64,000 nt of DNA from Bugula neritina (Eukaryota > Animalia > Bryozoa): assembly GCA_964035545.1 (NCBI GenBank), contig OZ037770.1, positions 2,542,001-2,606,000 of the forward strand. Direction: 5' to 3'. The position numbers and the translations under genes are program-made. Below, piece by piece: positions 1 to 63,079 of this stretch; within the stretch, counting starts at the first letter, position 1; each line of letters starts with the position of its first letter. The notes beneath the pieces are model-generated. The model was not told the origin of the DNA and searched no databases. It worked only from the letters and a program-made list of their open reading frames with translations.

Positions 1-752
1 ATAATTATACTCTAATTTCACTATAAAACGGTTTTAATAAATTTGCGCTAGAGTCTTGTAGACAGAATTTCATAGTTGCAAACCAAATTGCTTATACGGC
101 GAACTATAGCAATTTATTGAAAAGCCATTTTTTAGCAAATATATTTTGCATTGTTATAAAGACATAAATTTTTTGTAGGTTTTGAATTTAAATATAAATG
201 TTGAAAGTTGAATAAAAATGAAGTGAACAAATAATTTTTGGCTGTTTATGCTGAGTATTAAAACAGACAGCTGTTATAGTGCCTGCTAAACACACAAACA
301 ATATTTGAAATTGCAGTTTACTCTTTTATTTTCTCCTCCTAGCCTTGCAATATATTGTTAAGTTAATATTTCTCTGAAACAAAGCTAAAATAAATGCTTA
401 ATTCAACTGTTTTGATAAACTGTAATGTGAATGATTTTGGTTTTGTGCATTTTTTAAAAAAAGTTATCTTGATTTTTAATAAACCAGAAAAGGGCAGCAA
501 AAAATATTTTTATATCTTCAAGTTTTACAACATAATAATAATAATAATGGTATTTTGATGCTGATAACAATAATAGTTATATTAATATTTATTTATGTAT
601 ATATTTATATAATAAATGAATGTGTAACAAGCTAGTGCAAAGAGAATATAACAAAGAAAGAGGCATATGGCAGTGATAATTCACTGCAGGTTGCGTGAAG
701 TTTGAAGGTCTTTGAGAAGCAAGAATTGCTATACAACCCCAGAGCAGAATCA

Positions 753-1025
<273 letters not shown>

Positions 1026-1026
1026 C

Positions 1027-2830
1027 TCAAGTGGAAATCTCTTCGCTACTGCCTTAAGAATCATGGGTAATAAAAATCGGTCAGAAGTATTGAGATAGCA
1101 TATATTCACTATTAAATGACAGATGTCTGCCTAATATAGCTATATATACCAACAAGATTTAAACATATTATAACATTCAACAGTTATAGCTCAAACTACC
1201 TCCATTTACAGCATATATAATAAACTTTATTGTACTTTCACATGAGCACTCCTTGACAATTGGAAGAATATTGAATTTATATATTAGACTATTGTCTTCC
1301 TGTTTTTTTCTAATTGACTGAAGCTATAGACAGTATACCTTAAATAATTTTCACACAATGCAAAAACTGTGACACACAAACCTCTCAGGTAGAGTAGATA
1401 ATTTACAGCCCATCATATTCAACTCTTTAAGTGATGTGAGTGATGACACAACTTCTGGTACAGTGTTGAGAGGATTCTCTCCTATGTCTAGTTTCTCTAA
1501 CTGAGTCAGCTGACATAGACTGTAATATAAAGTGTATGTAATACATAATCTTATAAAGCGTATCATAATAATGTATACTTAATATGTTACTTTTGTATAC
1601 AACAAGAAAGGTATAGAAGACATAAACTTATGGCAATGAGACACAAAGTGTTCACGGTACCTAGGTGAAAGTCTCTTGGCTACTGTATTAACAATCATGG
1701 CTAATAAAGATAGGTCAGAAGTATTGAGATAGTATATAATCACTATTAAATGACAGATGTATCTGCTTAATATAACTATATACCAACAAGATTTAAACAT
1801 ATTATAGCATTTAACAATGTTATTATATAAACTCTCACCATTTACAGCATATATATACTAAACTGTAATTATACTTTCACATGAGCACTCCTTGACAATT
1901 ATAGGAATAATTGAATTTATATTTTAGACTATATTGTTTGCCTGTTTTTTTCCAATTGGTAAAGCTATAGACAGTATACCTTAAATAATTTTTCACATAT
2001 TACAAAAACTTGTGACACACAAACCTCTCAGGTAGAGTAGATAAGTTACAGTTTGACATATTCAACTCTTTAAGTGATGTGAGTGATGACACAACTTCTG
2101 GTACTGTGTTGAGAGGATTCCCTCCTATGTGTAGTTCCTCTAACTGATTCAGCTGACATAGACTGTAATATAAAGTGTATGTAATACATAATCTTATAAA
2201 GCGTATCATAATAATGTATACTTAATATGTTACTTTTGTATACAACAAGAAAGGTATAGAAGACATAAACTTATGGCAATGAGACACAAAGTGTTCACGG
2301 TACCTAGGTGAAAATCTCTTGGCTACTGTATTAACAATCATGGCTAATAAAGATAGGTCAGAAGTATTGAGATAGTATATAATCACTATTAAATGACAGA
2401 TGTATCTGCTTAATATAGCTATATACCAACAAGATTTAAACATATTATAGCATTTAACAATGTTATAGTGTAAATTCTCACCATTTACAGCATAAATATA
2501 CTAAACTGTAATTATACTTTCACATGAGCACTCCTTGACAATTATAGGAATAATTGAATTTATATTTTAGACTATATTGTTTGCCTGTTTTTTTCCAATT
2601 GGTAAAGCTATAGACAGTATACCTTAAATAATTTTTCACATATTACAAAAACTTGTGACACACAAACCTCTCAGGTAGAGTAGATAGTCTACATCTCCCC
2701 ATATTCAACTCTTTAAGTGATGTGAGTGATGACACAACTTCTGGTACTGTGTTGAGAGGATTCCATTCTATGTCTAGTTTCTCCAACTGAGTCAGCTGAC
2801 GTAGACTGCAGTATAAAGTGTGCGATATGT
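1027..2830. repeat. Tandem 643-bp intron+LRR-exon duplication (about 3 units)
   Basis: Exon starts at 1382, 2025 and 2668 (period 643); introns nearly identical; a diverged partial unit at 1027-1380. Confidence 0.95.
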
Positions 2831-3641
2831 GTAGTACACTGTATCATAGTAACATATGCTATATACACAAGGAAAAACATGCAATAAATAAACTTATTGC
2901 AAAAAGCAACAGTAAAATTTTTATATTAAACTCAGTTGTAAGGATAAGATGTACTCTGTGTGCATTAGAGCAGTGAGCTTTGTTTTTTAAAGTTAAGCTG
3001 TCAGTTTAGTAGATAAGACGTGTTCACTCTACAGTACTATGAAAGTTGATATAATGACATTGTATTATAGTGTATCTCGATAGTTGGTGACATAAAGTGC
3101 CTTCCTTATAATCTTATATAATATCTGTAACTTTTGTACTCATAACTACATAAAACAGTCATGCTCTATGATTGATCATATGAAGTAACAGTTCAGATAC
3201 TGTGACACTTTTTTAGTTCCTACATCTGAAACAGCTGCAGTGTAACGGACACAATGTTTTACATATTGCTATTAGCTGTATACTGTATGATAATAATTTG
3301 ACTAAAATTATACTTTATATTACAGTTATATATAATACATAGTAAGACATTGTACAAATAAAAAATAATGTCATTTACCCTCTAAACGGTTGCTGTAATA
3401 AATACTCACTTATCTAGACTCGCTCTGTCAGTCAGCTTAGAAACATATAGATGCAGGGCTTTACCAGCAATCACTCCGATGTTATTGGGAATTTTCCCTT
3501 CTAGTTTGAGATGTGTGATGTCATAACTCCCAACTTCATTTTTCACTTCAGCACTAGTATATGACTTGGTATTAGACGTCCGTACATCTAACCAGTTTGC
3601 AGGAGGCTGTCCAGAATGTCTGAACCAGATTTTCATCTTCT
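1382..3641 (-). CDS. Leucine-rich repeat protein, partial (exons 3410-3641, 2668-2805, 2025-2162, 1382-1519; continues left of the last exon seen)
   Basis: Three 138-bp GT-AG phase-2 exons, each encoding two 23-aa LRRs (e.g. LTQLEKLDIGENPLNTVPEVVSSLTSLKELNMMGCKLSTLPER). The leader exon MKIWFRHSG...SLD ends in a phase-2 GTGAGT donor, compatible with the first LRR exon. Confidence 0.85.
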
Positions 3642-4479
3642 CTGTAACATTATACAGTGTGATTATTACACAGTGCTAGCAGGTGGTGTCTCTTATTCTG
3701 ACACCTGCCATCTACTGATTGAATATATAAATCAATAGTTAGGTTTCAGCCACCATATAGATACTTGTATATAGAACTAAACTACACATTCTTTGATGGC
3801 AGCTTCAGGTTTAACATAAGATGAAAGTAAAGTATCTAAGTTCCTAAAACTAACTGCATCCTGTATAATCTTTGGAGCTACTCCAAACTCTTGGTACCAT
3901 ATATTTTCCTAATTCTTGTTAAATACATAATTAGAATAAAAACTAAAAGCTTCTTTTAAGATCTCTAAAATTATGCTGATTGTGTTACAATATGAAAAAC
4001 ATCTCAAATCACTCTTTTTATTTATTACATACAATAACGGATCTTAAAAGAATATTTTGAACTTTCGCAATATTTTAAAATACTCACCACCAGTTGCCAT
4101 GGTTACCAAATTTCTTTACATTTGAGTCATTTTAATGTGTTTCAGTTTAGAATTGGCAGCTCCACCTACAACAGATATGAACTATAAAAAATACATTTAA
4201 CTATTCTCTTTTGCTTATTTCGATTTATATTATAAACTAATGGTGCATTTCATTACTTGAAACGACACTGTGTCGAGTTAATATGGAACTTACTTAGTAA
4301 AATACTATATATATAGACACACAGATACGCTAATGGATAGTGTACTGCAAAATCTTGATATATATCATAATATATGTAATAACACGGTACATAGAATTGG
4401 TATGTCAAATTTTATTACGAAAATATTCAAGTCAAATTATATTACACGTAATATAATTTGACTTGTATATTTTTGTTCT

Positions 4480-5075
4480 TGTTCTTCTGCAATCCTCTTG
4501 ATGGTCCTGTGTTTCTCTCTACAATTCTATTGCTGCTCAGAGCGTAAGTGGTGCGAAACCTCATAGCGATTCCCCACTTGCCAGAAAACTGCTCTACCGC
4601 TGCTAACCTAAACACCATGGAATTGTCTATGAAAAACTTGTAACATGGCCCTGGCTCAACAACAACACTTTGTGATTGAGCAAAAATATGCTCTGCATAC
4701 ATGGCCTGCAGTCGTCGTCATATGGCAAACATTGATGGACCACAGTCTATCATCGACAAGAAGCGTCGGCCCTAGTAGTGAGTCACATCAATGGCAACTC
4801 TGTTCCAGTAGTTTTTTACTGAGAAGTTTCTTGTTCACACAAAGCTTTCAGATCACAAGGCAGAATCAATTCTCAAAGATGCCTCGCACCCAGTGAGCTC
4901 AGTCTTTACTTGATATCAAAAACAGATCCCCACAAATCTGCCTAGCAAGATACAGAATTGTATCAAAGCCATGTGGTGAGAAAAATGTGCGGCCTAATAA
5001 ATTGAATCCTCGATACTTTCACCAGTGGCCAGTGCTACAGTCACATCTGCACTAGGACTTCCTGTTTCTGTGTCT
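4480..5075 (-). mobile_element. Degenerate Gypsy integrase fragment from a different family
   Basis: Hand translation gives WNRVAIDVTHY*GRRFLSMIDCGPSMFAI...NRIVERN(H)RTIKR, an rve core, with stops and frameshifts. Confidence 0.75.
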
Positions 5076-5079
5076 GTTT

Positions 5080-8000
5080 CCTGTTGATGGCATAATATGG
5101 CGTCTCCAGAAAAGTGGTGTACTCCACAGGGGCAAAAAGTCACAGTGAAATGTTGGGGGACGTGTATTCGTAGAGTTTGAGTGCGGAGAATGTACGTCGA
5201 CACTCGCTACGTTTCCTGTGGATGTCCTGTCCAATAATGACCTGTATCAGAGTTCGGGTTTGTCTGGTTGTCCAAGTCGTCTGTCGTAGTAAAGCTAGGA
5301 GTAACTCCAGTTTTTTGGTCTTGTCCAGTTGTATAGCGTAGTCATCAGGGGTGGTTGTCGGCTGTTCCGTCTGCGGCGTCAGGTGTACGTCAGATAACAT
5401 GTCAAGTTCAGCTTCAAATATGTTGTCCCAGTGTGTAGTGGGAGTGTCGAGTAGAGCTTGTATCTTGGAAGATACAGGTACAATGTCGCATGCAACAGAG
5501 TATTCGAATTCAAGCATAATTTTCTCAAATCACACTCCCTGTTGGAGACTCCACCCAGTCAGTACGACACTGTGACTGAGTTGGCAACCAACAACCTCCT
5601 GGTTTTCAAAAACCATTCGAGTGATTGCTCAACTCAAAGTCGCCAGTGAAATCATCTAACATCAGCAGTCCAACTTTATCATTATGACAAAGTGAGACTG
5701 AAGTCGGCTACTAGAATAAATTGTTTAATTATTGCTCACACCCACCTGCTCAGCGGCGACTTTATCCGTCAGCATTTCCGTGTTTCTTACCGGGTCGGTG
5801 TTTGATCCGGTATGAAAACTAAGTCAATATTTCAAGCCAGCGCGCTACTTGGCTAAATGGCTCAGCCTGTTGACACAACCATATCAAGGACGCAGGGTCT
5901 GTTCGTAATCTGACCGCACGCCCACACAGATATGGTCTAAAGTGTTTGACCGCCTTGACTACTGCCAGGAGCTCTCTCCTGGTTGTACAGTAGTTCTTCT
6001 CAGGGGGGCGATAGAGCTTTGCTATAGTAGGCCGCCAACACCTCGCAGCCATCTTGGATCTGAGATAGCACAGCACCTACATTGTGGTCACTGGCATCAG
6101 TATCCTAAATGTACTCTTTTGCCGGATCAGAGTACGCCAAGATGGGCGCCCCCACCAACTAATCCTTGAAGTGGCCAAAATGCCTGCTGTTCTGCATAGG
6201 TCCACTGCCAGCGTACTCCCTTTGCTGTCAGCCGCTTTAGCAGCTGAGCAATTCCTGCAAAGTCAGGTATGTACTGTTGGTAGTACCCTACCAACCCCAG
6301 GAACGCTCAAAATTCAGGAAGGTCGACAGGGACGGCCAGTCCCTCACAGCTTGTACGATCTCCGGGTTGGTGGCGTCTCTGTCTAGACCAACTACGTGGC
6401 CCAAGTAATTAACCTCCTGTTGCGGTAATGCACACTTAGAGGGCTTGAGCTTCAGACCAGCAGCTCAAAGGCTGTCAAACACTTCTCTAAGCCAACTGAC
6501 ATGAGTGCCGAAAATGGAGGAGATGACAATGATATCATCGAGATAGATGAGCAAGGTCTTCTAGTGTAAACCGCTCAGGACCTGCTCCATGAATCCCTGG
6601 AAGGTGGCCGGCGCAGACGTAAGTCCGAACGACAGCACCTTCCACTTCCAGAGCCCGTCTCGCATAATAAACGCTGCCTTGTGCTGTGCATCAGGATTCA
6701 AGGGCACCTGCCAATACCTGCTTAGCAAGTCCAGCGTACTGACTAACTTGCTACCAGCTAAGGCATTTAGCAACTCATCGATCCTAGGAAGAGGGTAAGC
6801 GCCCTGGATGGTCACGCTGTTCAGTTTGCAATAATCCACGCGAAACTTCCAGCTCCCATCCTTTTTTTAAACCAGGACAACTGGAGAGCTCCAAGCACCA
6901 TAGGCTGGCTCAATCAGGTCCTGGTTCAGAAAGTCTTGCACCTACCAGCTCACTTCTTTTTTTTCTCAGGACCTAGCCGACGGGTCAACTGCCTAATAAG
7001 GACTGTCCTCACCGCCAGGAGTATCTCATGACAGACAGCCTTAGCCAGGCCCATGTCATTGCCGCCACAACTGAACACGTCTCTGTAATCAGAGAGTAGC
7101 TGCACCACTACCAGGTGTTCTCGCTTACTCTCACAGCTATCACAGGCATCGCCATACAAATCTACCAAGTTTTCCGGCACTGTTCCCCCGCCGTTCCTAG
7201 CGGGTACTCCCTGGGCTTCATCCACCGTTTCCAGGGTGAGCCCGACATCCTGCTGTTCAGAATGGAACTTCTCTACTAGTGACCCAGCCAACAATTCCAA
7301 CGGCTCCGTGAAAGGGTTTACACACTGGACCAGGAATTTCCCCTGTTTATCCAGCCTATTTAGGCTGTTGGCGAGCTGGACGCTCTCCAGTGCACTTTTC
7401 ACCACTCTTGAGTCGGAGATTTTTCTACAGTTCACTCTGCAGCGGGCTGTAGTCCGGGAGCGCCCAGGTACAGTACAGCGCCGCACCACCTGCACTCCCC
7501 CCAAGGGCCTGCCAAACCGGTCCACACAAATAGCTCACGCCCGGTCATCATCTCCGAGACTTGTTGAAGTCGATGTGGCACTTGTGTCGCTTCAGAAATG
7601 GCATTGACGATGACGGTCTCACTGATCACCTGATCACGGACTCTACCAGTCAACTCTATCACGTCATAGAAAGTAATACACGACCCCTCTGCTAACGTGC
7701 TGTGTTCCCCCCCCCATATGGCTCCAGCTTCGCCTGGTCCCAGGTACTGAAGGTGTCAAACAGACGCCGACACAGGAGATTTTTGGTGCACGCTGTATCC
7801 AACAGGAATGTTGCAGCTTTGCAGGCAACTTTACCGGGAAGAAAATAACTGCTTCCATATAGCTGGGCGCTCACTGAGCGGTTCATCTCTGGAGGTGACA
7901 CCCCATGTGCATAGAGTTGGGAATGCACCTGCCCTTTCCAGTTGCGGGGGGTTTGTCGATGTGTAATGAGCAGCTGAGTTACATCTCGGTCTTGCTTGCA

Positions 8001-9528
8001 CACAGGCGACCGAGTGAAAGCTCGGTCCTGCTCTCGTGTGGGCAACCGAGGGAAATCTTGGTTCTGCTCCCACTCGTCATACCTCTCCTCCTCAGGTAAA
8101 CCTTCAAAGCGGTTTTGAGTGGCCAAGCCAAAGGTTTAGGCGGGCCTTGCGGTCTGCTGACTTTCCGTGGGGCTTGCCTTTCTGGCGAAGGCAGCCTCTT
8201 CACTTATTGGGTTTGGGCCTTGGCCTCGGAGGGTTAAACCGAGACCCACAGTCAGCGAAGTCTACCGCTGGCCGTTGTTGTTTAACTGCCTCTTTCTACC
8301 ATGGGAGCAAATTTGTCCGAAGTGCTCTCCACTACCACAGCCTCAGCATTCGGGGGCTTGCCTGCCGACGACAACTGTTGGCGACCTTGTGGGTCGCTCA
8401 GTTGTCGACTGTTGGCGCAGATGCCTGATCTCGACTAACAGCTCACGAACCAAGCTTGTGGTAAAGCTAGTAGGCTCGTCGGCTGCTGCCGTGGCGACAT
8501 GTACAACCGACTTGGATGACGACGTCGACACGTCGTCGTTTTCCTCCACTTACTGTACTGTCGTCCCAGCTCAGCGCGTACTGTCCGCGTGAAAATATGC
8601 ATTCCCAAGCCTGAAAGCTCGCCCTATAGTCTCAACCTCGGCCACTAGCAAGTGTTGCTTCAGGCCTAGGTTGTTGACAGACTGGAGGAAATAATCTAGT
8701 GCCAGACTCTGTCGGCCATTTGCAGGCAAGTCTCCACAGGCAACTTGTGCTAGCCGCTCAACTACGGTCGCGTGCTCTCTCAAAATAGTTTTAGGATTTC
8801 TCCTAAGTCCTTGGAGTTGCACACGCGCATCTTGAGTGGTGAGCCCAAACCGGGCTCTCAACACCCTAAAGATGTCGCAGACATCCTGACCAATCTCATA
8901 AGGTTTAGTCGGTTCCGTCAGGCACAACCGCAGCTGTATCAGAGTAACCCTGACAGGCTATCCACAGATGGCTGCCACATTGCTCCACATTCTCTTCTCC
9001 TGAGAAGATAGAAGCCTGCAAGTGGTACCTGTCCATAGGCAGCGCTGGACCGCCTATGTCATCCTCCATAGCCGCCGGCTCAACTCGCTTTTCATGGGGT
9101 ACGTCCTCTTTGTCGGCCATCTTTCCTCACTCCTTAACTAGGAGCATTAACTTTAAATTTATCCTACTGCTGCCACCACTGTTGTAAAACTGTGCATTCA
9201 CTAATTGCTGGGTATTTAAAGTAATGTAAAACTGCCAAGTTAAAGAGATTATTATGCGTTTATTTAATACAATATTTACACAAGTAAAACTGTACAATAC
9301 TTAGAAGACAAGTTACATAATTGCAGACAGAATACACACAACCTATTGTTAGCTAATGCACTGCCTGACTGCCGGCTATCCAAGCGTGCTTGCTATCTTC
9401 TAATTGATTAGTCCTGTCTTTGTTAGTAGCGTAGTAAGTACTGTCAGGCCGAATATAGGAAGGCCCGCTAATAGAAAAGTAGCAGGAGAGCTGTTCTTTT
9501 GATAATACTACTATACAAAATCTCTACA
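5080..9528 (-). mobile_element. Gypsy/Ty3 LTR retrotransposon A (decayed; 5' LTR ~9180-9528, gag, PR, RT, RNase H, integrase deleted, ORF3 remnant, no 3' LTR)
   Basis: PBS 9161-9178 (reverse complement TGGTGGCAGCAGTAGGAT); gag from 9120; LLDTAC protease; RT (YPLPRID, FGLTSAPATFQ); RNase H (NYCTTRRELLAV); homologous to elements B and C. Confidence 0.92.
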
Positions 9529-12500: not shown

Positions 12501-13189
12501 CTGCTAAAAAGTAGTGCAGCTACAGTTTGTAACACAAAACCTGCATCCAGTGAAATACTAGATTGTTGCCCTCTGAAATAAACAATTCCATGCAGTCGAT
12601 TGCACCATAATCCTCATAATATTTGCACACCTGATAGATTATAAAGCTAATGGCATATGATGGTGATAAGAATAGCTGTAATGTTCAATTATGAACAAAT
12701 AAACCAAGTAAGGGAGACGTGGTAAGGCCTCCAGTCTAAGAATGGTTCTAATATCTAATCATGGGCTACACTGCTTACTCATGAAAACTTTAAACAGCTA
12801 CCCTCCTCTTTTGTTATCTTAAGCTATTTCTACATGCAACTTATGTTTTCGAACTCAAAGTAATAAGTCATCAACGTTGAAATTATTACACATGACATTA
12901 TAGCCTAGATACTATGAGAATTGCGCATGTAAACATGGATCACAACTGACAAAGGAATAAAGTTATAAATGATCACCTGTTAATGAAATGTATTTGATTC
13001 GCTATATTGAAAATATCACTAATAATGCAAATTACTCTGCCAACTGTTCATGTGAACATGGATCACAATTGAAGCATTAATAAAGTTAAATTGTCATCTT
13101 TTTGTGAACTATAATTTTCATCACATTCTGCGTGGTAACATCTTCACAAGAATAGCTTGTGCATTATACTGTCCATAGTATATATATTA

Positions 13190-15585
13190 TAGTCTACACA
13201 GTGTATAGTATGTATTCTACACAGTGTATAGTATATAGTCTACACAGTGTATAGTATGTAGTCTACACAGTGTATAGTATATAGTCTACACAGTGTATAG
13301 TATGTAGTCTACACAGTGTATAGTATATAGTCTACACAGTGTATAGTATGTAGCCTACACAGTGTATACTGTATAGTATGTAGTCTACACAGTGTATAGT
13401 ACATAGTCTACACAGTGTATAGTATATAGTCTACACAGTGTATAGTATGTAGTTTACACAGTGTATAGTATGTAGTCTACACAGTGTATAGTATGTAGTC
13501 TACACAGTGTATAGTATATAGTCTACACAGTGTATAGTATGTAGTCTACACAGTGTATAGTATGTAGTCTACACAGTGTATAGTATATAGTCTACACAGT
13601 GTATAGTATGTAATCTACACAGTGTATAGTATGTATTCTACACAGTGTATAGTATGTAGTCTACACAGTGTATAGTATGTATTCTACACAGTGTATAGTA
13701 TATAGTCTACACAGTGTATAGTATATAGTCTACACAGTGTATAGTATGTAGTCTACACAGTGTATAGTATGTATTCTACACAGTGTATAGTATATAGTCT
13801 ACACAGTGTATAGTGTGTAGTCTACACAGTGTATAGTTTATAGTCTACACAGTGTATAGTATATAGTCTACACAGTGTATAGTATGTAGCCTACACAGTG
13901 TACAGTATGTAGTCTACACAGTGTATAGTATATAGTCTACACAGTGTATAGTATGTAGTCTACACAGTGTAAAGTATGTAGTCTACACAGTGTATAGTAT
14001 ATAGTCTACACAGTGTATAGTATATAGTCTACACAGTGTATAGTATGTAGTCTACACAGTGTATAGTATATAGTCTACACAGTGTATAGTATATAGTCTA
14101 CACAGTGTATAGTATGTAGTCTACACATTGTATAGTATGTAGTCTACACAGTGTATAGTATATAGTCTACACAGTGTATAGTATATAGTCTACACATTGT
14201 ATAGTATATAGTCTACACAGTGTATAGTATATAGTCTATACAGTGTATAGTATATAGTCTACACAGTGTATAGTATATAGTCTACACATTGTATAGTATA
14301 TAGTCTACACAGTGTTTAGTATATAGTCTACACAGTGTATAGTATATAGTCTACACAGTGTATAGTATATAGTCTACACAGTGTATAGTATATAGTCTAC
14401 ACAGTGTATAGTATATAGTCTACACAGTGTATAGTCTACACAGTGTATAGTATGTAGTCTACACAGTGTATAGTATATAGTCTACACAGTGTATAGTATG
14501 TAGTCTACACAGTGTATAGTATGTAGTCTACACAGTGTATAGTATATAGTCTACACAGTGTGTAGTATATAGTCTACACAGTGTATAGTATATAGTCTAC
14601 ACAGTGTATAGTATATAGTCTACACAGTGTATAGTATGTAGTCTGCACAGTGTATAGTATGTATTCTACACAGTGTATAGTATATAGTCTACACAGTGTA
14701 TAGTATGTAGTCTACACAGTGTATAGTATATAATCTATACAGTGTATAGTATGTAGTCTACACAGTGTATAGTATATAATCTATACAGTGTATAGTATAT
14801 AGTCTACACAGTGTATAGTATGTAGTCTATACACTGTGTATAGTATGTAGTCTACACAGTGTATAGTATATAGTCTACACAGTGTATAGTCTACACAGTG
14901 TATAGTATATAGTCTACACAGTGTATATTATATAGTCTACACAATGTATAGTATGTAGTCTACACAGTGTATAGTATGTAGTCTACACAGTGTATAGTAT
15001 GTAGTCTACACAGTGTATAGTATGTAGTCTACACAGTGTATAGTATGTAGTCTACACAGTGTATAGTATATAGTCTACACAGTGCATAGTATATAGTCTA
15101 CACAGTGTATAGTATATAGTCTACACAGTGTATAGTATGTAGTCTACACAGTGTATAGTATGTAGTCTACACAGTGTATAGTATATAGTCTACACAGTGT
15201 ATAGTATGTAGTCTACACAGTGTATAGTCTACACAGTGTATAGTCTACACAGTGTATAGTATATAGTCTACACAGTGTATATTATATAGTCTACACAATG
15301 TATAGTATGTAGTCTACACAGTGTATAGTATGTAGTCTACACAGTGTATAGTATGTAGTCTACACAGTGTATAGTATGTAGTCTACACAGTGTATAGTAT
15401 GTAGTCTACACAGTGTATAGTATGTAGTCTACACAGTGTGTAGTATATAGTCTACACAGTGTATAGTATATAGTACACACTGTGTATAGTATATAGTCTA
15501 CACAGTGTATAGTATATAGTCTACACAGTGCATAGTATATAGTCTACACAGTGTATAGTATATAGTCTACACAGTGTATAGTATA
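13190..15585. repeat. 23-bp minisatellite TAGTCTACACAGTGTATAGTAT(A/G), about 100 units
   Basis: Direct tandem array with A/G variant units and occasional 16-bp units. Confidence 0.97.
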
Positions 15586-16053
15586 TGCAGTACATATAAT
15601 ATATATATATATATATAATATATGATACTTGGCTGTTATTGAGTTATTCGTGTTTTACCAAGTATGTAGCAACATAAATAACATATGTATTATATAATAT
15701 TGTATCAGCCATGTTGTGCATATTGTTATAGTTTGTTTAAAAGATAAAATATTCGCATGTAGGAATATTGAAATAAGCCAGTGAGCATATACCCTAGCCA
15801 CGAACACTGATATCTACTAATGATGTGCTTCTTATGATAATATTGAAATGCTATATTTGGGTTTATTTAGCAAAGATAAATTATATTTCTTATTGCACTA
15901 CTAATACTAAAACATAAATGGTTGTCACACAATAATAATATAAAGCTAAAAAATATCAGTTTTCGCTAATAAATGTAGAAAAAAACAGTGATATTTGTAT
16001 AACAATAAGCTAACAACTATTTAGATATCCCAAATGCTTTCCTCTGATTCACT

Positions 16054-21307: not shown

Positions 21308-24300
21308 TTAAACAGATACTATTTTCCCAACTCTGATATCCAGTCTGTTGGACAATAAAGGAAGTTCAGACGACGGACTTACTTCAGACTGAAAGTTTTT
21401 CTCTATATCTCCGTAATTCGTGTAGATCTTGTTCCCTCCGAATTCCTCCTTCCTTTCAATTAGCAACTCTGTAACAGGCAATCAGCAACTGCTTAATAGA
21501 CAATTGGCAACTCTGAGATATAACTCAAGTAATACATAATATATAACTCAAGTTATACATAATATATAACTCAAGTAACACATAATATATAACTCAAGTA
21601 ATACATAATATATAACTCAAGTAATACATAATATATAACTCAAGTTATACATAATATATAACTCAAGTAATACATAATATATAACTCAAGTAATACATAA
21701 TATATAACTCAAGTAATACATAATATATAACTCAAGTAACACATAATATATAACTCAAGTAATACATAATATATAACTCAAGTAATACATATTATATAAC
21801 TCAAGTAATACATAATATATAACTCAAGTAACACATAATATATAACCAAAGTAATACATAATATATAACTCAAGTAATACATAATATATAACTCAAGTAA
21901 CACATATTATATAACTCAAGTAACACATAATATATAACTCAAGTAACACATAATATATAACTCAAGTAACACATAATATATAACTCAAGTAATACATAAT
22001 ATATAACTCAAGTAATACATAATATATAACTCAAGTAACACATAATATATAACTCAAGTAACACATAATATATAACTCAAGTAACACATAATATATAACT
22101 CAAGTAATACATAATATATAACTCAAGTAACACATATTATATAACTCAAGTAACACATATTATATAACTCAAGTAACACATAATATATAACTCAAGTAAC
22201 ACATAATATATAACTCAAGTAATACATAATATATAACTCAAGTAATACATAATATATAACTCAAGTAATACATAATATATAACTCAAGTAATACATAATA
22301 TATAACTCAAGTAATACATAATATATAACTCAAGTAATACATAATATATAACTCAAGTAATACATAATATATAACTCAAGTAATACATAATATATAACTC
22401 AAGTAATACATAATATATAACTCAAGTAACACATAATATATAACTCAAGTAACACATAATATATAACTCAAGTAACACATAATATATAACTCAAGTAATA
22501 CATAATATATAACTCAAGTAACACATATTATATAACTCAAGTAACACATATTATATAACTCAAGTAACACATAATATATAACTCAAGTAACACATAATAT
22601 ATAACTCAAGTAATACATAATATATAACTCAAGTAATACATAATATATAACTCAAGTAATACATAATATATAACTCAAGTAATACATAATATATAACTCA
22701 AGTAATACATAATATATAACTCAAGTAATACATAATATATAACTCAAGTAATACATAATATATAACTCAAGTAACACATAATATATAACTCAAGTAACAC
22801 ATAATATATAACTCAAGTAACACATAATATATAACTCAAGTAATACATAATATATAACTCAAGTAACACATAATATATAACTCAAGTAACACATAATATA
22901 TAACTCAAGTAACACATAATATATAACTCAAGTAATACATAATATATAACTCAAGTAACACATATTATATAACTCAAGTAACACATATTATATAACTCAA
23001 GTAACACATAATATATAACTCAAGTAACACATAATATATAACTCAAGTAATACATAATATATAACTCAAGTAATACATAATATATAACTCAAGTAATACA
23101 TAATATATAACTCAAGTAATACATAATATATAACTCAAGTAATACATAATATATAACTCAAGTAATACATAATATATAACTCAAGTAATACATAATATAT
23201 AACTCAAGTAACACATAATATATAACTCAAGTAACACATAATATATAACTCAAGTAACACATAATATATAACTCAAGTAATACATAATATATAACTCAAG
23301 TAACACATAATATATAACTCAAGTAATACATAATATATAACTCAAGTAATACATAATATATAACTCAAGTAATACATAATATATAACTCAAGTAATACAT
23401 AATATATAACTCAAGTAATACATAATATATAACTCAAGTAATACATAATATATAACTCAAGTAATACATAATATATAACTCAAGTAATACATAATATATA
23501 ACTCAAGCAATACATAATATATAACTCAAGTAATACATAATATATAACTCAAGTAATACATAATATATAACTCAAGTAACACATAATATATAACTCAAGC
23601 AATACATAATATATAACTCAAGTAATACATAATATTTAACTCAAGTAATACATAATATATAACTCAAGTAATACATAATATATAACTCAAGTAATACATA
23701 ATATATAACTCAAGTAATACATAATATATAACTCAAGTAACACATAATATATAACTCAAGTAACACAGAAGAATAAATTAGCTATCACTAAGAATGTAGA
23801 CAGTATAGACAGAACGACAAAGCACCAGTGAGAGCTAACCGCCAGTGCCTACCACTGTTGTCCTTGACATTGAAGAGGACGTGCTTGACGAAGGCCAGAA
23901 CCCCGTTATCCGAGACGTTTCCGGGCTCACAGAACGCCATCTTTAGCTTCTTTTTCACTTGCGCAGCCGAGTCCAACAAATCTATTTTCGAGGAGTCGTC
24001 CGATGAGCTCATCTTAGCTCCAGCGAGTCCAGGAACTGAGAAACACACGAGATGATAGACCAAAGGCTAGATAAATGCAGAACTGAGGCTAAATAAGAGC
24101 AACTTGTAGAAAGTAGAGGGTTGGGGATCGATATTCAATAGAGACTAATACTGTGTAATTCAGGAAGAGAGATATTTATGTATACACATGCAAGAACTTT
24201 CGATCTTGGTTTGCGACCAGAAATATTTGGTCACGCTTTGGTGACTTTGATTCATGTAGAGAAGATAACTAACAATAGTAGTAACGATGAGCCAATAGAG

Positions 24301-30270: not shown

Positions 30271-33200
30271 TTAAACAGATGCTATTTTCCCAACTCTGAT
30301 ATCCAGTCTGTTGGACGATAAAGGAAGTTCAGACGGCGGACTTACTTCAGACTGAAAGTCTTTCTCTATATCTTCGTAATTCGTATAGATCTTGTTCCCT
30401 CCGAATTCCTCCTTCCTTTCAATTAGCAACTCTGTAACAGGTAATCAGCAACAGGCAATCAGCAACAGGCAATCAGCAACAGGTAATTAGCAACAGGCAA
30501 TTAACAACTGCTTAATGGACAATTGGCAACTCTGAGATATAACTCAAGTAATACATAATATATAACTCAAGTAATACATAATATATAACTCAAGTAACAC
30601 ATAATATATAACTCAAGTAATACATAATATATAACTCAAGTAATACATAATATATAACTCAAGTAATACATAATATATAACTCAAGTAATACATAATATA
30701 TAACTCAAGTAACACATAATATATAACTCAAGTAATACATAATATATAACTCAAGTAACACATAATATATAACTCAAGTAATACATAATATATAACTCAA
30801 GTAATACATAATATATAACTCAAGTAACACATAATATATAACTCAAGTAATACATAATATATAACTCAAGTAATACATAATATATAACTCAAGTAATACA
30901 TAATATATAACTCAAGTAATACATAATATATAACTCAAGTAACACATAATATATAACTCAAGTAATACATAATATATAACTCAAGTAACACATAATATAT
31001 AACTCAAGTAATACATAATATATAACTCAAGTAATACATAATATATAACTCAAGTAACACATAATATATAACTCAAGTAATACATAATATATAACTCAAG
31101 TAATACATAATATATAACTCAAGTAATACATAATATATAACTCATGTAATACATAATATATAACTCAAGTAATACATAATATATAACTCAAGTAACACAT
31201 AATATATAACTCAAGTAATACATAATATATAACTCAAGTAATACATAATATATAACTCAAGTAATACATAATATATAACTCAAGTAATACATAATATATA
31301 ACTCAAGTAATACATAATATATAACTCAAGTAATACATAATATATAACTCAAGTAATACATAATATATAACTCAAGTAATACATAATATATAACACAAGT
31401 AACACGGAAGAATAAATTAGCTATCACTAAGAATGTAGACAGTATATACAGAAAGACAAAGCACCAGTGAGAGCTAACCGCCAGTGCCTACCACTGTTGT
31501 CCTTGACATTGAAGAGGACGTGTTTGACGAAGGCCCGAACCCCGTTATCCGTGACGTTTCCGGGCTCGCAGAACGCCATCTTTAGCTTCTTTTTCATTTG
31601 CGCAGCCGAGTCCAACAAATCTATTTTTGAGGAGTCGTCCGATGAGCTCATCTTGGCTCCAGCGAGTCCAGGAACTGAGAAACACACGAGATGATAGACC
31701 AAAGGCTAGATAAGAGCAGAACTGAGGCTAGATAAGAGCAACTTGTAGAAAGTAGAGGGTTGGGGATGGATATTCAATAGAGACTAATACTGTGTAATTC
31801 AGGAAGAAAGATATTTATGTATACACATGCAAGAAATTTCGATCTTGGTTTGTGACCAGAAATATTTTGTCACGCTTTGGTAACTTTGATGTGTGTAGAG
31901 AAGATAACTAACAATAGTAGTAGTGATAACTCAATAGAACTGATAGAAGAATATGCATTCATAAGAGACATGCTGTCATTTCACTCTACATTTTAAATAT
32001 AGAATAGTTTCAGTTTACTCAATGAAGATAGAAACGGGTAGTATTTGTATAGATGTGGTCGGATGTTATATAAATATTATATATAATGACAAGGTATACC
32101 GTAGGCCTATGGAACAACCGCTTTGTAACTGCTTAAAGCCATGGATCTATTAGGTTACTGAATAGGGAACATACCGTGCCCCCCTCCCATTCCAATTTTC
32201 ATACTGTAAATATTTCACAGTACAATCTCAATTACTGCCTTGCTCACCAGTTTTAGGAGAAAATAGTTGAGGACCTACCCATAGGGTTCATGAGATGGGC
32301 CCTCTGCGCATAGCCCAGTTTGGGCAGATACTTTTCAGCAAATGTGAAAATCTTTCGCTGATCTACTCCACCGAACTGTGCATCACACTTCAAATATTCT
32401 TCATCGAGCGCTTGTAGACCAGGGTACAGCATTCCTGTAAGGAGCCGACATTATGTCATGACGTTATGTCACCGACTAACACAGCTATTTATTAAATCAT
32501 TACCCTTTCCAGTTGACCATAAAATGGCTGTAATATTTCAACCTGCATGTCTTGAATAATAAATAAGATAATTTGACTTGATAATCAGTCAAACTAATTA
32601 GGACAGAGTTACATTGGCTCTTTAAGTTGAGTCAGTCAAACTCATAAATTACGCTACAGTCATGGTATTTACTCAACACTAGGAAGTGTAGCTGTCATAT
32701 GCCTTCAAGCTAATTATTCTATCAGCAAAACTTTTATCATATTTATAAGGAAGTGGAGGAGGGCAAAGTTCTCTTTAATCATATTTCTGAGATGTAGTTA
32801 GACAATCTGGATACAACTCACGTAGCCGGTAAAACTGGCACAAGTGGCAAAGTAGGTAGAGATGGCACATTTTCAATATTATGTTAGGGGTGAGAGCGGG
32901 AGGATGGGGGTTTGAGTTTAGGGTTTGGGAAAATTTAACATCAGTTTGCCATTTTTACTTATTTTCCATTTGTGCCATTATTACCTAAATCATACACTAC
33001 AGTACAATACACAATTAAATAACCTAGACATACACTGCAGTAAGAGACATATTATATATTATATTATATATTATATAGTGCAGCACTATCTCAATACGAT
33101 ATTATATTCTACATATTATATTACATTATGCTCAACTGTATTATATGTTATACTACACCAATATCTCATACCATAGCATATTATATCAGAGTATATAATA

Positions 33201-40571: not shown

Positions 40572-62839
<22,268 letters not shown>

Positions 62840-63079
62840 CTGTAGTGATAAGAACACCAGCTAAATATTCCTAGTATCAGTTAAATATCCACTAGTTACT
62901 AATTACTAGTTACTAGCTAATAGTTACTAGCTCCTAGTTACTAGCTAATAGTTACTAGTTAATAGTTACTAATTGACACCAGAACTAGAGAAACTATATG
63001 CAAATATAACTACTCATATAGCAGTCATATTGATGCATATATATATATATATATCTACATATTACAGTTATATATATAA

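Follow-up and report, generated by a model that had tools for sequence, protein, structure and literature searches.

Variable leucine-rich repeat cassettes in a predicted LRR-Roc-COR-caspase gene of the bryozoan Bugula neritina

Tandem exons that encode leucine-rich repeats (LRRs) raise a particular question when the introns between them are almost identical while the codons within them are not: what kind of gene holds such exons, and how did its repeats come to differ? Exons of this kind lie near the left end of a 64,000-nucleotide stretch of the Bugula neritina assembly GCA_964035545.1 (contig OZ037770.1, here C6), where three LRR cassettes, A1, A2 and A3, occupy the minus strand of what we call gene A, which has a tandem paralog, gene B, some 76 kb to its right. 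The window analysed is this whole stretch, C6:2542001-2606000, and coordinates without a prefix are positions in it, whereas genome-wide searches covered the 216-Mb assembly with its 321 contigs. We consider it likely that the cassettes are part of the sensor arm of one germline-encoded, minus-strand LRR-Roc-COR-caspase gene, and that they arose through exchange or homogenisation under diversifying selection; the encoded protein might serve as sensor, switch and executioner in one.

The cassettes and their variable codons

The array consists of the following elements.

1382-1519, minus strand: LRR cassette exon A1 (sequence reading …LEKLDIGEN… NMMGCK…)
1520-2024, minus strand: intron 1, 505 bases, 91-93% identical to the introns of paralog B
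2025-2162, minus strand: LRR cassette exon A2 (sequence reading …LEELHIGGN… NMSNCN…)
2163-2667, minus strand: intron 2, 505 bases, differing from intron 1 at 7 of 505 bases without any insertion or deletion
2668-2805, minus strand: LRR cassette exon A3 (sequence reading LRQLTQLEKLDIEWN... NMGRCR...)

Each cassette is 138 nucleotides (nt) long, is bordered by a ...cag/ acceptor and a GAGAG/gtttgt donor (the slash marks the exon border), and reads in a single open frame, its first full codon preceded by one base and its last followed by two, so that both flanking introns are in phase 2. Successive cassettes start 643 bases apart, and the 46 residues of each cassette form two 23-residue LRRs (Pfam LRR_4, 30 bits). 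A second in-frame GT is found six bases past the donor of every cassette (1376-1381, 2019-2024 and 2662-2667, minus strand; GAGAG/gtttgt/gt), and use of this later donor would make a 144-nt exon with two extra residues. The 138-nt donor is probably the preferred one, as it retains the 23-residue repeat period and is the better AG/GT donor. An Rfam search of positions 1-4500 gave no match. Coordinates and phases agree with an earlier note, made from the letters of the window, which had described three symmetric 138-bp phase-2 exons of two LRRs each at a 643-bp period. Its hand counts were right as well: the roughly 7 intron differences in 505 are exactly 7 without an indel, the exon counts (11 and about 15 of 138) and the motif strings are correct, and PLNTVPEVVSSLTSL, which it called invariant, is indeed unchanged across A1, A2 and A3.

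The three pairs of exons show 11, 12 and 15 differences in 138 bases, significantly more than the introns do (Fisher p = 2e-6 to 2e-4). This divergence is unevenly spread: per exon pair, 8-10 of the 21 bases of seven variable codons differ, whereas in the framework 3-5 of 117 bases do so, and in the intron 7 of 505. The variable codons are thereby set far apart from the intron (Fisher p = 1e-8 to 1e-11), whereas the exon framework is not significantly different from it (p = 0.06-0.41). In the introns, all 7 differences are confined to 1671-1852, and the exon-adjoining stretches of 151 and 172 bases are identical between introns 1 and 2.

The same seven codons stand out across the family, as seen in a sample of 134 canonical cassettes, 124 of them distinct, taken from 17 loci. 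The Shannon entropy stays close to zero along the cassette save at codons 11, 13, 14, 34, 36, 37 and 39, which correspond to x5, x7 and x8 of the LxxLxLxxN motif in both repeats, together with x10 of the second. In LRR structures, positions of the x5, x7, x8 and x10 type are placed on the concave face and its rim. By the Nei-Gojobori method, the seven codons have a nonsynonymous divergence (dN) of 0.62 and a synonymous divergence (dS) of 0.26, a ratio of 2.4, which becomes 4.9 when the framework dS of 0.13 is taken as the reference; for the other 38 codons, with that dS of 0.13, the ratio is 0.44. A parsimony count on a FastTree tree gave 2.5-3.9 at the seven codons and at most 1.6 elsewhere. 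These comparisons show an excess of amino-acid-changing substitutions at seven codons predicted to lie on the concave face. The enrichment at exposed LxxLxLxxN positions that the earlier note had seen locally therefore extends to the 134 family cassettes, whose dN/dS comes to 2.4-4.9 at the seven codons and 0.44 in the framework, and both agree with its view of an animal receptor-like gene.

Exon and intron histories

When did the variable codons diverge? Codon 36 reads GGG, TCA and ATG in the three exons, and codons 37 and 39 differ at two bases. With two to three changed bases per variable codon beside introns only 1.4% apart, the patches must be old and the intron identity young, and independent point changes within the time of 1.4% intron divergence are not plausibly the source of the variable codons. 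Each of the three exons, and each of its halves, resembles cassettes megabases away more than the cassette next to it. The best genome match of A3 elsewhere is 95% identical, against 89-91% for its neighbours, and that of A2 is 94%, against 89-92%; half exons show 2-4 mismatches to the distant cassettes and 5-8 to those next door. Fifteen bases of the second patch of A1 are common to cassettes at C6:4630353, 4643196 and 4644589; only this A1 patch has one-mismatch kin (C6:4.63-4.64 Mb), and the second variable patch of A2 is unique in the genome.

Two simple derivations were considered and rejected. Recent conversion from an extant donor was discarded since no exact donor was found among the 134 sampled cassettes or, for two patches, in the whole genome, and A2 is not a crossover chimera of A1 and A3, for it bears changes of its own in both patches.

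Comparison with gene B and with the wider family gives a view of introns and exons side by side. The last 300 bases of the intron at 2806-3409 are 96% identical to the matching intron of gene B, and despite this upstream identity, A3 and its counterpart by position, B1, disagree at 22 of 138 exon bases; conversely, the second-repeat residues YMWDCKLSDLPE are common to B1 and B4, although their introns are unlike. Of the 25 sampled intron pairs that are at most 3% apart, 13 come from plain block duplication, with exons and introns equally alike, 6 resemble the gene A locus in that both flanking exon pairs differ at 8 or more of 138 bases, and 6 are mixed. Exons of equal length and neutral frame occur here together with discordant exon and intron histories, as exon shuffling would leave them.

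The earlier note had proposed exon duplication, conversion or skipping as the generator of diversity, and had named equal exon and intron divergence over a larger set as evidence to the contrary. Such equality does hold in the 13 block duplicates of the 25 pairs, and fails in the recurrent class of 6. Duplication and exchange are borne out by the discordant histories, both in the 25-pair set and between genes A and B, whereas the idea that diversity arose after the local duplication does not stand, as the variable codons are multi-hit, and thus old and reshuffled.

A possible origin can be sketched in three steps. The 643-base unit may have been duplicated recently, or its introns may have been homogenised via unequal crossing-over or gene conversion; patches that were old and already diverged would have been retained, or imported by exon-confined exchange with other cassettes; and diversifying selection would have preserved the unlike binding faces. 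We infer two germline routes, namely intron homogenisation with selection sparing the binding face, or exon-confined exchange. The latter would come naturally, because between distant genes only the exon framework is alike.

Could the same pattern arise with no positive selection at all, from seven codons that are simply unconstrained or mutation-prone, the contrast to the introns being produced by intron-homogenising gene conversion alone? Gene conversion is clearly at work in the family, half of the intron pairs that are nearly identical are block duplicates whose exons show no excess of change, the codon set was picked post hoc, and recombination inflates tree-based counts. Neutrality, however, predicts dN close to dS, and at the variable codons dN (0.62) exceeds their own dS (0.26) as well as the framework dS (0.13) and the intron divergence. 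Moreover, these codons fall on the structure-fixed positions x5, x7 and x8 and not on random sites, and homogenised tracts that end at exon borders, with 151 and 172 identical flanking bases, need either selection or exon-limited homology. We regard an origin free of positive selection as quite unlikely and keep to exchange or homogenisation with diversifying selection.

Gene A, its paralog and its family

The remaining parts of gene A are as follows.

3410-3636, minus strand: first coding exon, ATG at 3636, 75 codons plus 2 bases, donor AA/gtgagt, phase 2
2806-3409, minus strand: intron between the first exon and A3
1-1381, minus strand: first part of intron 0, which extends 567 bases past the window start to the 2006-nt exon
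C6:2539428-2541433, minus strand: LRR-tail/Roc/COR exon, 2006 nt, acceptor ttttcag/G, donor CCAT/gtatgt
about C6:2528013-2529280, minus strand: three caspase pieces, open (PF00656)

On the right, the exon at 3410-3636 matches no Pfam family, and its sequence is 67-79% conserved in at least 34 places on contigs C6, C7 and C113, each directly upstream of a cassette array; this position ahead of the arrays identifies it as the first coding exon of the family. On the left, bases 1021-1381 of intron 0 are about 88% identical to introns 1 and 2, and a (TA)n tract at 758-1025 interrupts the intron. The acceptor of the 2006-nt exon is in phase with the cassettes, and from the first exon via the cassettes into this large exon, the splice sites and phases fit together.

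Extension to the left, which the earlier note had recommended as the way to find downstream domains, reveals Roc-COR and then a caspase. The 2006-nt exon encodes three more LRRs, a Roc GTPase and about 400 further residues, and its LRRs are certain to share one exon with Roc. Roc is recognised by PF08477 over C6:2539428-2541433 at 30.1 bits (cut-off 27), with the motifs GNTMAGKT (P-loop), DMGGQ and THKD; G116, G121, K122, T123, D170 and G172-G173 are invariant across 20 relatives. It is the only nucleotide-binding module found, in place of the NACHT/NB-ARC module that would mark a nucleotide-binding LRR receptor (NLR). An AlphaFold model of the large exon, built on an alignment of these 20 relatives, reached a pLDDT of 85 and a pTM of 0.83. 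Its structure matches include LRRK1 (2e-25), the CtRoco LRR-Roc-COR crystal structure 6hlu (1e-21) and LRRK2, with 660-720 aligned columns between the model and LRRK1, LRRK2 and CtRoco LRR-Roc-COR, and it matches the isolated COR structure 3dpt at E = 3.5e-10 with a TM of 0.60. PF16095 is present in relatives that are 36-39% identical over the full length. By its predicted fold, the segment directly C-terminal of Roc is a COR domain.

The caspase pieces match PF00656 (two p20 pieces with 40.5 and 45.7 bits, one p10 piece with 23.8 bits), the genome-wide search places caspase matches at C6:2528615-2528836 and 2529059-2529205 on the minus strand, and the catalytic His/Cys dyad is intact (THG and QACSG). 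Between the COR and caspase exons lies a degraded Gypsy-type element. As read from splice sites, phases and domain matches, the predicted gene order is first exon, three cassettes with six LRRs, the 2-kb LRR/Roc/COR exon, a linker and the caspase exons.

Gene B has the same gene plan, with a (TA)n tract and a retroelement in the same introns as gene A. Its parts are distributed as follows.

49792-50034, 50380-50604 and 62553-62870, minus strand: caspase exons and linker exon of paralog B
65431-67497 (window-relative, past the window end): Roc-COR exon of paralog B

Five cassettes and the first exon of gene B follow past the window end, the gene reaching window-relative position 79877, and a further cassette at window-relative 77498-77702 is frameshifted. 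Synonymous divergence between A and B is lowest in the caspase exons (dS 0.07-0.10) and the first exon (0.11), rises to 0.26 in the LRR tail and 0.39 in Roc, and reaches 0.77 in COR, a mosaic which suggests that segments were replaced from other family members. The corresponding omega is 0.19 for Roc and 0.26 for COR (0.19-0.5 over Roc, COR and caspase), and the caspase exons, the first exon, Roc and COR are all under purifying selection.

Gene A is a short member of a large bryozoan LRR-Roc-COR-caspase family. The genome contains more than 184 DNA matches to one unit, 351-356 first-look cassette candidates, 328 Roc-COR candidates and 177 caspase matches; first-exon matches count at least 34 close genes. 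For the large exon, 83 database relatives were found, the best (89% identical) being from JGI metagenome contigs. Another, the B. neritina protein EB796_002463, which contains Roc, COR and caspase, has 36% identity to the large exon; it matches the genome studied here at only 85-90%, which marks this genome as that of a related bugulid or another lineage, distinct from assembly GCA_010799875.2, and a motif scan of B. neritina contig L061 found no cassette-type LRRs upstream of it. In the cheilostome Watersipora subatra, XP_067947674.1 (1419 amino acids, aa) combines LRR, Roc-COR and a complete caspase (126.7 bits) in a single chain, and XP_067948342.1 is likewise an LRR-Roc-COR-caspase model; in the amphioxus Branchiostoma floridae, XP_002614028.1 (1609 aa) has LRR, Roc, COR-A, COR-B and a caspase of 172 bits. 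The Watersipora proteins are 35-36% identical to gene A over Roc-COR, and the exons of the gene (LRR exons roughly 141-153 nt long, a single exon of some 2055 nt for Roc-COR, then caspase) follow the same plan, which therefore predates bugulids, although the Watersipora LRR exons have diverged from each other, unlike the near-identical cassettes. A related protein ends in a CARD. The 1675-aa database protein P0151 is laid out as HEPN_DZIP3, LRRs, Roc, COR-A, COR-B and CARD, and by this layout ROCO receptors with death-fold or caspase ends seem to be a wider, undescribed invertebrate group.

Set beside the 10-19 cassettes per array in sampled family members, the three of gene A invite the view that it is a decaying copy, a shrunken, non-functional or dying member left with the remnant of a longer array. 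Intron 0 begins like a cassette intron and then runs into (TA)n, as if another cassette had been lost, a degraded Gypsy-type element sits between the COR and caspase exons, and the adjacent paralog B holds a frameshifted cassette. The recognised exons, on the other hand, are all open, with intact splice sites and matching phases; the GTP-binding and catalytic motifs are present; omega between A and B is 0.19-0.5 for Roc, COR and caspase; and retroelement and (TA)n are common to paralog B, hence old and tolerated in introns. Decay is in our judgement unlikely.

Several points nevertheless weigh against the reading of gene A as one working receptor gene shaped by exchange and selection. Gene A has only three cassettes, with a degraded Gypsy-type element and (TA)n in its introns, and could be a shrinking copy. 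Pfam COR-A matched neither at the locus in the genome-wide search nor on the 2006-nt exon; domain searches were made exon by exon, and the exons between COR and caspase are delimited only in part. That the locus yields a single transcript, is expressed and uses the 138-nt donor is presumed from the logic of the sequence together with gene models of other species. The dN/dS and parsimony counts are crude, tree-based counts ignore recombination, and the seven codons were chosen from family variability. Among the 134 sampled cassettes, there is no identical whole exon, half exon or patch, and two patches have no identical copy anywhere in the whole genome; this absence of an exact donor leaves both routes, exchange and selective retention, standing. 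Finally, a function in immunity, cell death or allorecognition is something that we purely infer.

The surroundings of gene A are rich in repeats. Degraded copies of Ty3/Gypsy-type long terminal repeat elements with broken frames lie at about 5000-9100 and at 55000-61820 (both minus strand) and at C6:2531000-2537000; one Gypsy copy occupies the same COR-caspase intron of genes A and B, which places its insertion before the segmental duplication. A better-preserved Gypsy-type element at 42107-48500 (plus strand) has long open frames, one gag-like of 310 aa and one for protease/reverse transcriptase/RNase H of 488 aa, together with pieces of an integrase. Large tandem arrays are found at 13188-15586, 21518-23767, 30537-31402, 41278-41746, 49219-49811 and 52236-54169. 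Among them are a (TA)n tract some 1.9 kb long and two satellites with a 23-nt unit, each repeated about 100 times; one of the two satellites turns up again at 21.5 and 30.5 kb. The caspase intron of gene B contains a 21-nt minisatellite, and its counterpart in gene A holds a short tandem repeat (VSSLYLV reading) that is comparable, at least in position.

Comparison with known receptors and significance

Both ROCO proteins and modular LRR exons are already known; what is new here is an exon-modular, hypervariable-LRR ROCO gene in an animal, with a predicted fusion to a caspase, and a literature search found no paper on a ROCO-caspase architecture in animals. The closest parallel is the one to which the earlier note had pointed, the LRR-ROCO genes of the brown alga Ectocarpus, in which one exon encodes one LRR and exons are shuffled (Zambounis et al., 2012, PMC3341825; PMC11378527). 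The parallel is apt, with Roc-COR downstream and modular exons here too. Common to both are an LRR arm, here a predicted one, N-terminal to Roc-COR, repeat exons of equal length that are frame-neutral, the duplication and shuffling of these exons, diversifying selection at exposed positions of the LRRs, and high rates of gene birth and death. The exons themselves differ, being 138 nt with two 23-residue LRRs in phase 2 here and 72 nt with one 24-residue LRR in Ectocarpus, and unlike the algal genes, gene A has a caspase after COR and an animal host. Common descent of the cassette organisation is unlikely.

Among animal proteins, the order LRR-Roc-COR is shared with MFHAS1/MASL1, LRRK1 and LRRK2. 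RefSeq names the Watersipora relatives 'MFHAS1 homolog', and the nearest Atlas clusters are MFHAS1-like. The structural matches to LRRK1, LRRK2 and CtRoco come with only 12-14% sequence identity, and in contrast to MFHAS1 and the LRRK proteins, gene A has a predicted C-terminal caspase and no kinase, a massive expansion and cassette-coded hypervariable LRRs. The models from Watersipora, B. neritina (EB796_002463, Roc-COR-caspase) and amphioxus have the domain order of gene A; they are automatic, unstudied annotations. Related layouts are described for prokaryotic LRR-AP-GTPase(Roc)-COR-effector conflict systems (Kaur et al., 2021, PMC8195603) and for invertebrate LRR-Roc-COR-TIR/Death genes (PMC5094078, PMC9334734), in which rapidly evolving LRRs at the N-terminus are likewise followed by a Roc-COR switch and, at the C-terminus, by an effector or adaptor that varies. 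Here the effector would be a caspase fused into an animal protein, while the part of the prokaryotic account that we draw on does not confirm a caspase for the bacterial set (PMC8195603).

In its working logic, gene A would resemble NLRs with their inflammasomes and plant NLRs: a hypervariable concave LRR sensor, a nucleotide switch and a cell-death protease as output. The means differ, since gene A has a Roc GTPase with COR as its switch and, as predicted, a fused caspase, whereas NLRs use a NACHT/NB-ARC ATPase of the STAND (signal transduction ATPases with numerous domains) class and recruit the caspase via CARD/PYD. Under this scheme, a ligand bound by the LRR arm would flip the Roc-COR switch, the switch would activate the fused caspase, and a single chain would unite sensor (LRR), switch (Roc-COR, as in LRRK2 and bacterial Roco) and executioner (caspase) for immunity, cell death or allorecognition.

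The variable lymphocyte receptors (VLRs) of lampreys and hagfish also draw on many germline LRR cassettes that vary at the same motif positions. VLR cassettes are unspliced donor pieces that are copied somatically into an incomplete germline gene. The cassettes of gene A lie inside a complete gene and have canonical acceptor and donor sites, and so are not of the VLR type. One may still ask whether they are used combinatorially, by regulated skipping, mutually exclusive splicing or somatic exchange, giving several specificities per gene. Any subset of symmetric 138-nt phase 2-2 exons stays in frame, near-identical introns could favour pairing or recombination, and the idea has been raised for brown-algal ROCO genes (PMC3341825). 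Ordinary splice sites within a complete gene, unlike lamprey VLR donor cassettes, and a diversity that lies in the germline assembly, where duplication and exchange account for it, make this very unlikely. If it were true, binding faces would differ per cell or zooid, an animal way of generating diversity unlike V(D)J, VLR and Dscam.

With the germline reading preferred here, the locus is an unusually clean natural experiment, in which binding-face codons are unlike and the introns around them almost identical, and it bears on how repeat receptors keep their diversity despite concerted evolution. The same architecture sits unstudied in gene models of Watersipora and amphioxus. If gene A and its relatives are expressed and work as their parts suggest, bryozoans carry hundreds of one-piece receptors, each chain uniting a rapidly evolving LRR face with a GTPase switch of the LRRK2 type and a caspase. 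Such receptors would be an alternative, and a compact one, to the NLR-adaptor-caspase inflammasome. Bryozoan immunity being almost unknown, the family could matter for colony fusion and rejection or for the control of symbionts.

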